DNA from: Octopus sinensis
Lineage: Eukaryota
Reading direction: 5' to 3'
Assembly: GCF_006345805.1 (NCBI RefSeq)
Contig: NW_021829914.1
Span: 1 to 35,275 of the forward strand
Length of the DNA stretch: 35,275 nt
Shown: one piece after another, positions 1-32,976 of the stretch
How positions within the stretch are numbered: position 1 is the first letter of the stretch
How the letters are laid out: each line of letters opens with the position of its first letter
The notes under the pieces: model-generated
What the model saw: the letters and a program-made list of their open reading frames with translations, nothing else
Databases searched by the model: none
What the model was told of the DNA's origin: nothing
Position numbers and translations under genes: made by a program

Positions 1-165
1 CGTCTTCCTTCTTTGGATCTTTCCTTTTCCTATGTTTCTGACGAAGAGCTCCGCTCGAAACGTTAAACACTCCTTTCCTTCTTGCCTGAGCGTCCAATAA
101 TACTATACTGTTCCACGTCCTCGCGTTGTTGTGTTTTCTCTTTGTGTTTTTAATGTTGGATTAAC
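1..165 (+). mobile_element. Terminal (pLTR-like) fragment of a Penelope-like element carrying a hammerhead motif
   Basis: Hammerhead core at 33-69 inside a pyrimidine-rich stretch that runs into (TA)n at 166. A same-layout relative lies at 32890-33063. Confidence 0.6.
33..69 (+). ncRNA. Minimal type I hammerhead ribozyme motif
   Basis: TGTTT(33-37) CTGACGA A GAGC-TCC-GCTC GAAA CG TT AAACA(65-69). Helix I 5 bp, helix II 4 bp, palindromic helix III ACGU, predicted GUU site at 62-64. Confidence 0.75.
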
Positions 166-425
166 TATATATATATATATATATATATATATCTATATAT
201 ATATATATATATATATATATATATATATATATATATATAATATATATATATATATATATATAAATTATTAGAGAGTTAACCACTATGTGGATAACTCTAG
301 TGCTAAAAATGGTATTATTAAATTAATATCGATTTTTCACCCTCATTTATATAAATATATATATATATATATATATATATATATATATATATATATATAT
401 ATATATATATATATATATATATATG
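166..425. repeat. (TA)n microsatellite arrays (166-262 and about 353-425)
   Basis: Direct reading. Many more (TA)n, (CA)n and (TATG)n arrays occur throughout the window. Confidence 0.97.
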
Positions 426-819
426 TGCACATTCAAAAGGAAAAAAAACACATACACGCACATTACAACCACAACAAACATTCACAAACTTACATGCACA
501 CACACAAGCATGCACACACACAATGACACATACCTCCCCGACAAATACAAGGCATATAAACGCACCCACAGAAACACTCCTACACGCATACACATATTGC
601 ACTAACAATACAAACAAAACAGATCACTCACAAATGCAACACACGTGCACACACACACACCCGGAAACTACAGAACTACATAAACCATACCCACACATAT
701 ACACACACACACAAACACATACTCAATACCAACACACACAAAACGCATATACACACACGCCACTCAGATAAACCCAACATATATACAAACACATACACAA
801 ACTAGCGCACACGCAACAC

Positions 820-1260
820 ACTAACAAACATTAACCACACACATACATACACATATACACACACCATCCTACCAAATTTTGAAAACACACACAGACACAT
901 CTATTTACACCACAATGGACCCTGGGACCAATCAGAAACGGCCCCTCCACACAAACACATGTATATATATATATATATATATATATATATACACACACTC
1001 ATATCATTCTGACCCCCATACAGACGCACCATGACAAATACTAATCACGCACATACACACACTAAGACAATCACACACACGGCTAACAAACGGGCACACA
1101 CATACACACACCATCCTACCAAATTTTACAAACACACACAGACACATCTATTTACAACACAATAAACCCTGGGACCAATCAAAAACGGCCCCCACACACA
1201 AACACCAACACATGTATATGTATACACACACACACAAAGACTCGCACCATTCTGACCTCT
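820..1260. repeat. Diverged tandem duplication, period about 247 bp, in CA-rich DNA
   Basis: caccatcctaccaaatttt...gacacatctatttaca...ccctgggaccaatca..aaacggcccc starts at 862 and again at 1109. Confidence 0.9.
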
Positions 1261-1639
1261 AAAGACCAATCCCCCAAATCATTGATGCTTGAAGGAGAGA
1301 CAAAGAAGTTCTTTTCAGTTCCACATTACTTTTCCTTCCCCCCACTCAAACACCCCTACACTGTCCCTTGAAATAAAAAATAGTCTTTTACGATAAAATG
1401 GTGAACCAGGTCAGTTTAAGCTACCACTACTAAAATGTAAACTTTTTTGAACTTATAATATTCTGTATGTGTGTGTATATATATATATATATATATATAT
1501 ATATATATATATATATATATATATATATATATATATATATATACAGATACAATACCAATATTCCACTGAACTTTTTAATAATTCCTTCTGGAAACTATCT
1601 TTAACCTTTTCTTGAGAATATGTATATATATGTTGTAAT

Positions 1640-1947
1640 CTTTTGTGCCCAATATTTTAATGAACTTGTTAAACTATTTAATATTTTCCCAAGATTTTCC
1701 CTTGTAAGCTGTTCTTAACATGTCCTTATTATCAAGGAATGTATATGTATATTGTAATATTTTGTGACAACCATTACCTGGCACAACCAAGCTTTTGTGC
1801 CCAATATTTTGATGAACTTGTTAAACTTTTTTATATTTTCCCAAGATTTTCTCTTGTAAACTGTTCTTAACATGTTCTTGTTATCAAAGAATGTATATAT
1901 GTATTGTAGTATTTTGTGACAACCAGTAACTAACACAACCAAGCTTT
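1640..1947. repeat. Tandem duplication, two units of about 152 bp
   Basis: cttttgtgcccaatatttt at 1640 and 1792; both units end in cacaaccaagctttt. Confidence 0.93.
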
Positions 1948-29829: not shown

Positions 29830-31945
29830 ATATAAAAGAAGGAAAATGGAGAATGGGAAGATAATAATTGTTTATTAACAGCAAATTAATCATCTTCTAC
29901 AATTGTTTCGATTAATATTCAGTAAATATTAAATAAATATTAAATTTATGTTTATATGCCCTGAGCATAATATCTTCAGAGGGGAAAAATATACTCTTGG
30001 ATGTTTCATTATATGGGTTCATGGATTCATTATAGCAGACTGAATGATACGGTTTATGATTTGCATTGTTATATGTTCGGGCGAGGGATTTGCAGGTTGA
30101 TTAGAGATAAGATAGTGTTGGTAAATAGAATTAGAACAATAAATGAATAAATTAAATAGAGATGATAAGGGAAATGTAAATATAAACAAGAACATGTATG
30201 TATGTATGTATGTATGTATATATATATATATCCGTATGTGTGTATATGTATGTATATAAGTGCGCGTGTCTGTGTCTGTGAGTATGCGTACGTACGTGTG
30301 TGTCTGTTTAGGCGTAAGTATGTGCCTCTATATGTGTGTTTATGCATGTATAGGTGTATGTGTGCGTATACACCTTTGATACACCTTAAATTTACGTGCG
30401 TTTGTACACATGCGTATTTAAATGTTAGGTACTTTCATATGCACATTCACACACCAAAAGCTTACAAAACCGTTCAAAACAAATATATTTTCCTTGAATC
30501 GCCAAAGAGTAAACAAAATAATTCAAAATTTCATTAACCAATCGGAATGAATTTACCAACACAGACCAAATTTTGCTTCTTCTTAGCGGCGATAGATAAA
30601 AAGAGTAAACATGTATTTGCGCATGTATATATATATAATATATATATATATATATATATATATATATATATATCTGTAATATAATATGTGACAGTTATAC
30701 GGTTGCCATAATAAAACTCCGAGTTTCGGATGTCGGAGCGAAATCTACTCCGGCATCTTGTCAGTTATGAAGGCAATCAAATTATTATGTAACTGACCGT
30801 TATTAAGACAAAGGAGCAATTTGAATAGCCGTTAAATAAGGGTAAAAACCGAAGGGGAAAAGTAAAAAAGTAAAAATGCTCATAGAAATCGCGTACGCGG
30901 GCATGTATATACCTAAACATGCGCGCACGTACACCCACGTACATGCACCTGTATGCATGTGCTCACTGGAACTCGCATGAAACACATACATGCGCACATG
31001 CGTCTATATATGCACACTTTTAGTGCTTTATATATTTTTACATATTTTTTCTGTATTTTACCTTTCAGCCTGCATTTTTCTTGTACATGTGCGTATATAG
31101 ACATGTATATGAACATTATTGTGCACGTATGGGTATATATACGTGTGCATGTGTACAGATATGTATATATGTGCATGTATATGTATATGTGTATGGTTCC
31201 ATATATATGTGGTGTACATGCACGTGTTTCACGCGAGTGTGAGTGAGCATATGCATATATAGCATGTGCGTATTTTAGACGTGCATTTGAATATAACTGT
31301 GCACGTTTGGTTGTGTGCACGTGTGTGAGTGTGCGCGCGTGTGCGCGGCTATATATATATATATATATATATATATATATATATATATATATGCATATGT
31401 ATGGTTGCATATATATGTGCGTATGTGTGGGTGTGTATACGTGCGTATATATGTGCGTATGTGTGGGTGTGTATATATTTCGCTATACATACATACATAC
31501 ATACATACATACATACATACATACATATATGCGTACTTGCATATATACAAATTTGCATAACTTAATTATACCTTTAACTATAAACTTACCTTACTTATAT
31601 TTAAATTTCCTCTATCATCTCTATTTAATCCATTTATTGTTCTAATTCTCTTTAGCAACACCATCTTATCTCTAATCAGCCTGTAAACTCCTCGCCCGAA
31701 GATATAACAATACAAATCATAAACGGTATCATTCAGTCTGCTATAATGAATCCATGAACACATATAAAACTTCCAAGGGTGTATTTTTTCCCTCGATAGA
31801 TATGCTGAAGTCATATAAATATAAATTTAACAAGTACTTAATATTTATTGAGCGTTAATTGAAAAATCTGTAAGAGAAGATGATTAATTTGCTGTTAATA
31901 ATAAACAATTATTACCTCGCAATCTCCATTTCCCCATTTCTTCTT
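29830..31945. repeat. Inverted pair of about 350-bp diverged copies (29830-30190 and 31590-31945), each with a damaged hammerhead
   Basis: catggattcattatagcagactgaatgatac..tttatgattt..ttcgggcgagg..gattagagataagat (about 30020-30115) appears reverse-complemented at about 31665-31755; homology extends on both sides. Confidence 0.88.
30711..30768 (-). ncRNA. Variant hammerhead-like motif (family shared with 23966-24026)
   Basis: Minus strand: AUAA CUGACAA GAUG-CCGGA...UCCGA-CAUC C GAAA CUCGGAG UU UUAU; G8 is A. Confidence 0.45.
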
Positions 31946-32321
31946 TATATATATATATATATATATATATATATATATATATATATATATAATATATATA
32001 TATATATATATATATGTATGTATGTATAGCAAAACATATACGTTATGTATATGCGTTCGACAATATTTGCAACACACGCGCTACTTCTAATTGATATTTG
32101 AATTTATTCCTGCTTATGCATCGTGTGGGCATACCATTTTACATAAAGCCATGGACAAGCTGCACAATTTGCTTCTGGTTCGGTTCAAGTACGAACCAAA
32201 GGTGGAACATTGATATCTATTGCTCCTGAATCGCAGCCGACCATTGAACAAACAAACACACATTTTGTATAGTGCTTACGTTTACCACACTCGTTTGTGT
32301 GTGTGTGTGTGAGTATATATA

Positions 32322-32855
32322 TAAAGTAAAGATTGTTTGCCAACATAATATGGCTGTCCTGGATAGGACAGATGCTACTGTTGTTTAGCCCCAGGAAACA
32401 TCGTTTCTAGCTGGTTATACGTTACAATATCTCTGATTCCTTATATTTTCGAACAGGAAGTCCAGCAACCCCATCCAGCACGAAGCAACATTTGTGGACC
32501 ACTTTCTGGGTTATTGCGCTTTACCAGACACAGAATAGCTGCTTGGCTAGGTGGCGTCGCTGAATTCCCGTTCGAAAATATATCATTTTCAAAATGACAC
32601 ACAATAACTGATCTAATAAATGGAAACATTATAATTTCTAAATCTCTCAATGAGAGATATATAGTAACATTTCTTTAAAGTAATATATAATTTTCAAATA
32701 TAAGGACATAGATATTGTGTCGTATAGCCAGCTGGAAACAATGTTTTCTGGGGCTAAACAACAGTAACAATCAGCCTATCCAGGACAGGCATATTATGCT
32801 GGCAAATAATCATTACTTTAAAGAGCTGTTACTGAATATCTTTCTTTGAGAGATA
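32322..32855. mobile_element. Rearranged cluster of the 8948-9250 family forming inverted arms of about 125 bp
   Basis: 32331-32432 is the reverse complement of 32710-32811 with roughly ten differences; arms extend to about 32322-32448 and 32695-32820. 32641-32686 is the reverse complement of about 32812-32855. Confidence 0.75.
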
Positions 32856-32940
32856 TAGAGATAATAATGTTTATATATATATATATATCCCTAGCCACTA
32901 CACATTCTTTATTTTCTCTCCTTGTTTCTTTCTATGTTCC

Positions 32941-32976
32941 TTTCTGTGGAAGAGCGTAGGCTCGAAACGTTAAAGA
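32941..32976 (+). ncRNA. Hammerhead-like motif with non-canonical core CUGUGGA
   Basis: TTT CTGTGGA A GAGC-GTAG-GCTC GAAA CG TT AAA; same layout as 33-69 but A6 is U. Confidence 0.5.

Follow-up and report, generated by a model that had tools for sequence, protein, structure and literature searches.

Hammerhead ribozymes (HHRs) of a minimal type I form are carried by Penelope-like elements (PLEs), and dimer cleavage of minimal hammerheads has reportedly been described by Lünse, Weinberg and Breaker. Here, we analyzed such motifs in an entire unplaced contig of Octopus sinensis (C6385; NW_021829914.1 of assembly GCF_006345805.1, which comprises 2.72 Gb in 13,516 contigs). This stretch of 35,275 bp is referred to as the window. 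The closest described system is the set of minimal hammerheads of PLEs (Cervera and de la Peña 2014, PMC4209133), in which helix III has little or no loop, positions 15.2-16.2 are palindromic, helix I is short, and an extra nucleotide can stand before position 10.1. These ribozymes form consensus families with covariation, their copies are mostly solitary or close together on opposite strands, a U3-A8 core variant is described for schistosome PLEs, and the ribozymes are poor catalysts in vitro (PMC4209133). PLE insertion is biased to microsatellites, to (TA)n in the Naiad clade, and PLEs in general have inverted 5'-truncated copies, by which inverted repeats are formed (PMC8557442). Animal non-LTR retrozymes (LTR, long terminal repeat; Cervera and de la Peña 2020, PMC7229834) are short, AT-rich, non-coding repeats with type I HHRs, which are defined by tandem arrays of 170-400 bp and circular RNA and have been proposed as non-autonomous partners of PLEs (PMC7229834; Li, Clavereau and Pollet 2026 preprint, 10.64898/2026.07.22.740005).

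A first-pass annotation of the window had listed about 13 hammerhead motifs and proposed that the palindromes of helix III act as a family-specific code for dimer recognition. All thirteen sites were located at coordinates and on strands in close agreement with that list, and 12 of the 13 are hammerheads or decayed relics; the site at 8285 (UUGAAGA, with a homologue that has no core) is not supported as one. The motifs are likely minimal type I hammerheads of the PLE kind, carried by eight short non-coding families (A-H) that would be non-autonomous PLE derivatives or passengers. That several such families reside together had been suggested before and is supported here. The families are most likely truncated or pLTR-like units that are close to animal non-LTR retrozymes.

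Like the PLE hammerheads, the octopus motifs are of type I, with a short helix I, a palindromic 15.2-16.2 segment and little or no helix III loop. They sometimes have the extra nucleotide between A9 and 10.1 (family A), fall into many covarying consensus families in one genome, and occur mostly as solitary or opposite-strand copies; the dimer model applies to them, and the U3-A8 core variant is found in the autonomous PLE of this genome. They differ in that most copies lie outside a recognizable PLE and have no sequence link to the sampled PLE loci, and in that several families have U.U in place of G10.1-C11.1 or carry 40-80 nt inserted into helix II. The likeness to animal retrozymes extends to a canonical family in this genome that scores with Rfam and has a tandem spacing of 431 bp, whereas families A-H are mainly dispersed single or inverted copies that are known from DNA. 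According to the citing article, newt satellite 2 and avocado sunblotch viroid (Forster et al. 1988, cited in PMC4209133) likewise extend a weak helix III by pairing of two copies; as described there, however, their helix III has 1-2 bp and a loop, which is absent here. The Sm-alpha and Sj-alpha SINE-like elements of Schistosoma (reviewed in PMC6765202) are also dispersed short non-autonomous retroposons with an internal HHR, but according to that review their HHRs are canonical and active as monomers, and the texts consulted report no (TA)n or foldback architecture for them.

The Rfam scan of the window, which the first-pass annotation had put forward as a check, gave no matches at the gathering threshold, Hammerhead_1 (RF00163) included, and no hammerhead family appeared among the 150 sub-threshold matches listed at E values up to 10. 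The RF00163 model presupposes a helix III hairpin, and it does detect seven canonical copies elsewhere in the genome. Because the Rfam scans showed no hammerhead, a custom descriptor was written to capture type I hammerheads whose helix III has no loop. In its strict form, the descriptor requires 4 bp or more in helix I, the sequence CUGANGA, 3 bp or more in helix II (one additional nucleotide being allowed after A9), GAAA, an A...U segment that is self-complementary and 4-13 nt long, and an H17 that is not G. It matched the window at 38-64(+), 6921-6860(-) and 24707-24672(-), and 17467-17368(-) became the fourth match once a 3-bp helix I was accepted. A scan for the U3-A8 core variant (UUGANAA) found none in the window.

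The window is AT-rich (GC about 25-51%) and is packed with (TA)n, (TGTA)n and similar microsatellites, and the motifs might therefore be thought chance matches in AT-rich, repeat-rich DNA, as the lack of an Rfam match at threshold and the chance-like appearance of site 8285 would allow. In 300 dinucleotide-preserving shuffles, however, the mean number of matches was 0.00-0.017 and the maximum was 1, compared with 3-4 in the window, so that the similar counts in shuffled sequence named earlier as a refutation did not appear; moreover, the motifs are kept in hundreds of copies with covariation. Chance is thus hardly credible as a general explanation and is refuted for 12 of the 13 sites. The list of sub-threshold Rfam matches was crowded with microsatellite look-alikes of microRNA models; those to mir-297, mir-466, mir-3149 and related models lie on (TG/TA)n and (TGTA)n tracts throughout the window (for example, 3865-3935, 4790-4910 and 15619-15689) and are low-complexity artefacts.

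With the strict descriptor, the three matches in the 35-kb window compare with about 13 incidental matches in about 215 kb of flanks of loci fetched otherwise, corresponding to a density of about one motif per 12-16 kb over the 276 kb sampled. Since this sample is small and adjacent to repeats, the genome-wide motif number derived from it is an order of magnitude only; as a rough extrapolation, it looks to be above the 2,000-9,000 per genome quoted in 2014. The window and the sampled flanks have this density in common, and the window is therefore typical of the genome. The motifs had been called dense, and they are, although this is a property of the whole genome and not of the window in particular.

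To characterize the repeats, the genome was searched with about 200-300 nt around each motif. In every family search, 40 of the 40 scored candidates were significant, with about 80-95% identity. The total counts, which are first-look candidates, were 420 for family A (sites 33 and 32938), at least 2,241 for family B (site 6853), 1,723 for family C (sites 9122 and 32494), 1,316 for family D (site 17365), 1,444 for family E (site 24668), 386 for family F (site 25239), 1,810 for family G (sites 23966 and 30710) and 841 for family H (sites 29894 and 31790). Copies for alignment, 20-30 per family, were drawn from the best-scoring matches and are small samples. In these alignments, the consensus hammerheads were better than several of the window copies: in consensus C, helix I is 6 bp long and helix III reads ACUAGU, consensus F has a 4-bp helix I (UGCA/UGCA), consensus G has a CUGACGA core, and consensus H has helix I CCCU/AGGG. 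All eight consensuses contain C3-U4-G5-A6-N7-G8-A9, G12-A13-A14, A15.1-U16.1 and an H17 that is not G. For family A, 20 genomic copies with 92-95% identity have kept the HHR and have (TA)n on both sides.

The annotation had described helix III as self-complementary and with little or no loop, and this holds for all eight consensuses: ACGU in A, ACAUGU in B, ACUAGU in C, ACGUACGU in D, ACGAUUGU or ACAAUUGU in E, ACGAUCGU in F, ACUCGGAGU in G (with a central unpaired G) and ACAGCUGU in H. The palindromes that it listed were right for the window copies, but two of them, ACUGGU and the ACAAUUGU of the copy at 29894, differ from the consensus of their families. The position G10.1-C11.1 is G-C in A (after the extra A), B1, B3, D and F and A-U in E, whereas U.U is present in three unrelated families or subfamilies, B2, C and H (loci L036-L057, L092-L111 and L175-L194); the axolotl HHR_Amex2 likewise has U.U at the base of helix II (PMC7229834). 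In family G, helix II and G12 are separated by a conserved C that is unpaired.

Pairing of two copies through the palindromic helix III, as proposed at the outset, is supported by covariation in families B and H. In a pairing count on 21 sequences of family B, 94.5% of cells were paired, compared with 22-45% when the partners were slid. The subfamilies of B showed compensatory changes in helices I and III, with changes on both sides at pair 2.1-1.1 of helix I (AU in 11, GC in 8) and at the central pair of helix III (AU in 18, UA in 3). The latter is a palindrome-preserving double change from ACAUGU to ACUAGU in three copies, counted as one event, and in family H a second double change turned ACAGCUGU into ACAAUUGU (GC to AU) in one copy, that of the window; such independent events are few. 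Among 30 copies of family E, helix III read ACGAUUGU in 17 and ACAAUUGU in 10, a difference of G.U versus A-U. Most helix III variants within families were single, uncompensated and often of the CpG type, as expected for decaying retro-copies. Between families, helix I is wholly different yet paired in each, and an E-like copy (L004) has UUGUC/GACAA in place of the AUGUC/GACAU of E. Divergence from consensus amounted to 4.4% of cells in the core and helix III compared with 10.4% in the surrounding 100 nt (odds ratio, 0.40), and the HHR core was 2-5 fold better conserved than its surroundings in six of the eight families, a test that is affected by subfamily structure and imperfect alignment of the flanks. 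Covariation and conservation together support selection for hammerheads in which two copies jointly make up helix III, consistent with the published model.

The architecture of the repeats provides the link to PLEs. Families A-H are short (0.2-0.55 kb), non-coding interspersed repeats. The unit of family A is about 220 nt long with (TA)n at both ends, that of family B is about 530 nt long with an internal inverted repeat and (TA)n at the 3' end, and that of family E is a near-perfect foldback of about 460 nt between (TA)n tracts. Many genomic copies of B, C, E, G and H stand head to head with an inverted partner. Same-strand neighbors are rare (507 and 1,217 bp apart in B, 406 bp in E and 1,353 bp in C), inverted pairs are commoner, and the window has no same-strand pair of one family within 6 kb. 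Two PLE insertion signatures were therefore found, namely (TA)n flanks (A, B, E and the PLE bodies) and inverted adjacent copies (B, C, E, G and H).

PLEs themselves are present in the genome. Of 4,846 first-look candidates in a search with the GIY-YIG profile, at least 147 exceeded the cut-off; several of these lie in open frames of 775-883 amino acids, and two frames have RVT_1 followed by a C-terminal GIY-YIG, which is the canonical PLE layout. The two PLE bodies with located ends (L132 and L134) are bounded by (TA)n. L132 (about 4430-4480) and L133 (about 4975-5020), both numbered in the orientation of the ORF, have a hammerhead close to the 3' end, at a distance of about 70 nt, in which the core is UUGAUAA, the rare U3-A8 variant, and helix III is ACAUGU, and small HHR units with ACAUAUGU and ACUCGAGU adjoin the PLE at L134. 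In the window, no PLE open reading frame (ORF) adjoins any of the 12 motifs; only relics were found, at 34912-35275, by tblastn with the 781-amino acid PLE ORF of this genome. They are in inverted arrangement and meet near 35085: the relic at 34912-35073(-) covers residues 611-664 and that at 35100-35275(+) covers residues 682-740, the GIY-YIG region, and runs off the contig (E = 1e-15 and 2e-9). In the comparison of the families with PLE loci, an apparently shared TTTTCGAAC stands near the 3' ends; this likeness may be a coincidence, since the sequence contains a palindrome.

A different origin could be considered for those families that form foldbacks (B and E, perhaps also C and H), which might be DNA elements resembling miniature inverted-repeat transposable elements, moved by a transposase that targets TA, with the hammerhead as a hitch-hiker or relic. 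The 460-nt near-perfect palindrome of E with its TA-rich flanks would fit this explanation, as would the predicted failure of family E RNA to fold into a hammerhead and the relics of a mariner-type transposase in the window, one of which, at 16117-16518(+), corresponds to the N-terminus of a mariner/Mos1-type enzyme (HTH_48, E = 9e-7). However, what borders the elements on either side is a long (TA)n tract, as in some PLE insertions (PMC8557442), and not a simple TA duplication; head-to-head inverted copies are a described PLE signature; the better conserved HHR core covaries; and family A is not a foldback yet has the same flanks. Movement as such DNA elements is accordingly very unlikely, and the families are better read as non-autonomous PLE derivatives or passengers.

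For families of this kind, the following mechanism can be proposed. A monomer cannot close helix III, which has a loop of 0-1 nt, and two copies would consequently be joined by the palindrome; a monomer is all but impossible here, except in family G, in which 3 bp and a triloop may form. The partners of the double hammerhead would normally be two units on one transcript of a tandem locus, or else two identical RNAs. Each strand would be cut in a core built mainly by the other strand, with helix I formed between the strands, and cleavage is predicted to trim the RNA to unit length. The reverse transcriptase and endonuclease of a PLE could copy the unit-length RNA into (TA)n sites, and the window copies would mostly be solitary, partly decayed retro-copies rather than working source genes.

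Several results weigh against this reading of the families. Rfam Hammerhead_1 stays below threshold on every motif of the window, and the conservation test is confounded as mentioned above. A neighbor on the same strand within 2 kb was found for only about 1 scored copy in 20-40. Family E RNA is predicted to fold as one long hairpin, with a minimum free energy of -181.3 kcal/mol, in which the 3' half of the hammerhead is buried. The U.U of B2, C and H, the unpaired C of family G and the 3-bp helix I of family D may make these ribozymes poor catalysts. Work in vitro on the one PLE so far reconstituted found that its HHR cleaved only with protein and that insertion did not require this cleavage, and no ends were seen by RNA-seq (PMC11167929). 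Finally, blastn of families A-H against three PLE loci found no shared sequence, just incidental nearby insertions, and the dependence of the families on PLEs is consequently inferred from architecture only.

We then considered the geometry of the double hammerhead and what it means for the proposed recognition code. Strand tracing showed that the double hammerhead is a domain swap, in which each copy contributes its 15.x side to pairing with the 16.x side of its partner. The H17 and the 3' helix I strand of each copy thereby come to lie at the partner's core, and helix I is therefore intermolecular as well. For the family E motif, the minimum-energy dimer predicted by RNAcofold contains an intermolecular helix III of 8 bp and a pair of swapped helices I, with -21.2 kcal/mol compared with 2 x -7.7 kcal/mol for the monomers.

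Compatibility was evaluated for 17 family or subfamily motifs (136 pairs), eight of them from the window families and the rest from PLE loci and locus flanks. Full compatibility was found in helix III for 10 of the 136 pairs, in the swapped helix I for 2, and in both for 1. On average, homodimers were predicted to be more stable than heterodimers (-7.4 versus -2.4 kcal/mol), but 36 of the 136 heterodimers reached -4 kcal/mol or better and overlapped the homodimers. The ACGU duplex of family A has -1.7 kcal/mol on its own. As A15.1-U16.1 and C15.2-G16.2 are present in every consensus, only 1, 4 and 16 Watson-Crick palindromes of 4, 6 and 8 nt, respectively, are possible. Some of them recur: ACUAGU is common to B3 and C, ACAUGU to B and the autonomous PLE, ACGAUCGU recurs between F and a family that differs from it in helix I and core, and ACAUGUGU is found in two families. 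By rough arithmetic, about 21 possible palindromes among 17 families would give several shared ones by chance, and about 4-5 were seen; the families therefore show no sign of avoiding the palindromes of one another.

These results bear on the idea that the palindrome is a selected, family-specific address, through which only RNAs of the same family would form productive double hammerheads and be processed orthogonally. The palindrome is indeed conserved within families and often different between them, 126 of the 136 pairs are not fully compatible in helix III, and the predicted stabilities favor homodimers on average. However, unrelated families have identical palindromes, the palindrome is not constant within families B, E and H, and few palindromes are possible. 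Helix I discriminates better, as 134 of the 136 pairs are already barred by its swap; 36 of the 136 heterodimers overlap the homodimers in predicted stability; and the 4-bp ACGU duplex cannot drive association in trans. A tandem double hammerhead formed in cis, with two units on one transcript, requires no recognition code. The code as originally stated was thus not borne out, and a selected address is unlikely. The literature search found no paper that tests the heterodimer specificity of a palindromic helix III. Since the swapped geometry gives specificity across families through helix I, the idea reduces to subfamilies that match in helix I and differ in the palindrome. The sister subfamilies B2 and B3 are such a pair, with the same helix I and a palindrome switched from ACAUGU to ACUAGU, and in this one case the palindrome would be the sole discriminator. 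A functional code, for which this pair is the sole foothold, is neither needed nor favored and is improbable. The different palindromes are best read as drift under a single constraint, that of staying self-complementary, and not as selected addresses.

The individual sites of the window support the assignment to families as follows. The annotation had called six cores intact (33, 6854, 9122, 17365, 24668 and 25240), and all of them are, although the copies at 9122 and 25239 are weakened. The conserved core with an H17 that is not G is present in the copies at 33, 6853, 9122, 17365, 24668, 25239 and 29894. The family A hammerhead at 33-69(+), a descriptor match, reads UGUUU/CUGACGA/A+GAGC-UCC-GCUC/GAAA/ACGU (helix III)/U17/AAACA and belongs to an element at about 1-165 that is truncated by the contig start and followed by (TA)n. 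The family B hammerhead at 6853-6928(-) is also intact and a descriptor match; it has a 7-bp helix I, CUGAGGA, helix II GCUA...UAGC with a 37-nt insert, helix III ACAUGU and C17. In the family C copy at 9122-9160(-), which was aligned with 20 genomic copies, the core is intact, helix II has U.U at its base and helix III reads ACUGGU, with a G.U where the consensus reads ACUAGU. The family D hammerhead at 17365-17470(-) has an intact core, a 3-bp helix I, a helix II insert of about 80 nt and helix III ACGUACGU; the variants among 24 aligned copies of this family are single CpG-type decays. The intact family E hammerhead at 24668-24711(-), again a descriptor match, reads CCAC/CUGACGA/AUGUC...GACAU/GAAA/ACAAUUGU/A17/GUGG. 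It lies in an element at 24459-25014 that consists of the near-perfect foldback of about 460 nt with (TA)n on its flanks and contains an inverted repeat (I3) with 113-nt arms that are 96% complementary. The family F copy at 25239-25334(+), aligned with 20 copies, has an intact CUGAAGA core and helix III ACGAUCGU and has lost helix I, in which UACA replaces the UGCA of the consensus.

The sites that had been called damaged are, with one exception, decayed members of hammerhead-bearing families, since the family consensuses carry an intact HHR. The cores at 23966, 30710, 31790, 32494 and 32938 are mutated, as had been described, whereas the core at 29894 is intact and the damage there is the loss of helix I. 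The family G relics are at 23966-24026(-), with core CCGAAGA and helix III ACUCAGAGU, assigned by homology to the family, and at 30710-30769(-), with core CUGACAA (G8 to A) and helix III ACUCGGAGU. The family H copy at 29894-29984(-) has U.U at the base of helix II and a 3-nt deletion that takes out the 3' strand of helix I; its helix III is ACAAUUGU, compared with ACAGCUGU in 19 of 20 other family H copies, the remaining one having decayed to ACAGCUUU. A second family H relic lies in the opposite orientation at 31790-31876(+), where both the core and helix III have decayed, and was identified by inverted repeat I1 and by alignment. At 32494-32539(-), the core of a family C relic is no longer recognizable, and the site was assigned by alignment and is covered by family C copies. 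The relic at 32938-32976(+) has core CUGUGGA and helix III ACGU, and the family A alignment has CTTTCTGTGGA at the core. Around the hammerhead, this site resembles the 33(+) copy when compared by eye; as the coverage test with family A copies did not reach it, its membership in family A rests mainly on this comparison. The exception is 8283-8322(-), which reads UUGAAGA...GAAAGUGCU. It lies in a repeat, but the sole homologue with this region (L076) has no HHR core, and the site was rejected as a hammerhead.

Further features were observed in the window and in the genome. A tail module of the form ...AATTAATATCGATTTTTCACCC...TTTATA followed by (TA)n is present at the 3' end of family B copies and alone at 316-345 of the window; the AATTAATATCGATTTTTCACCC module (300-345 in the window) may be a 3' recognition or tail sequence shared by several families. 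At 17043-17274, just upstream of the element of family D, stands an incomplete copy that is related to the family E outer arms and lacks the hammerhead. The block at 10258-12158(+) was considered as a PLE and rejected, as it is a decayed non-LTR element (LINE) with RVT_1 fragments and zf-RVT in several frames, which accounts for the GC-rich stretch at about 9-13 kb. Elsewhere in the genome, a canonical type I hammerhead family (L001 and L004-L007) scores 34-48 bits with RF00163 and has helix I GUGUAC/GUACAC and helix II GACCC/GGGUC; two of its copies (L006 and L007) lie 431 bp apart on one strand at G000:C16:25146363-25146839, a retrozyme-like tandem. Two 174-nt copies at 7238-7411 and 7927-8100 of the window (98% identical, 689 bp apart) and a 152-nt tandem duplication at 1637-1940 (89% identical) are unrelated to the hammerheads as far as examined.

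Taken together, the window is a natural sample of how many kinds of minimal hammerhead coexist in one animal genome, with eight families in 35 kb and, probably, tens of thousands of copies genome-wide alongside intact PLEs. The objects belong to a known kind, PLE-type minimal hammerheads in non-autonomous repeats, and do not represent a new kind of system; what is new here is the eight hammerhead-bearing families, the kind itself being already described. The clean compensatory changes that keep helix III self-complementary are indirect evidence for the double hammerhead as the selected form. A narrower version of the code would treat the palindrome switches (ACAUGU to ACUAGU in B and ACAGCUGU to ACAAUUGU in H) as isolating mutations, to which we attach little probability. 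If it were true, a new subfamily that shares the helix I of its parent would be processed only with its own kin, and the palindrome would be a kin tag that drives the splitting of ribozyme-bearing retroelement lineages.

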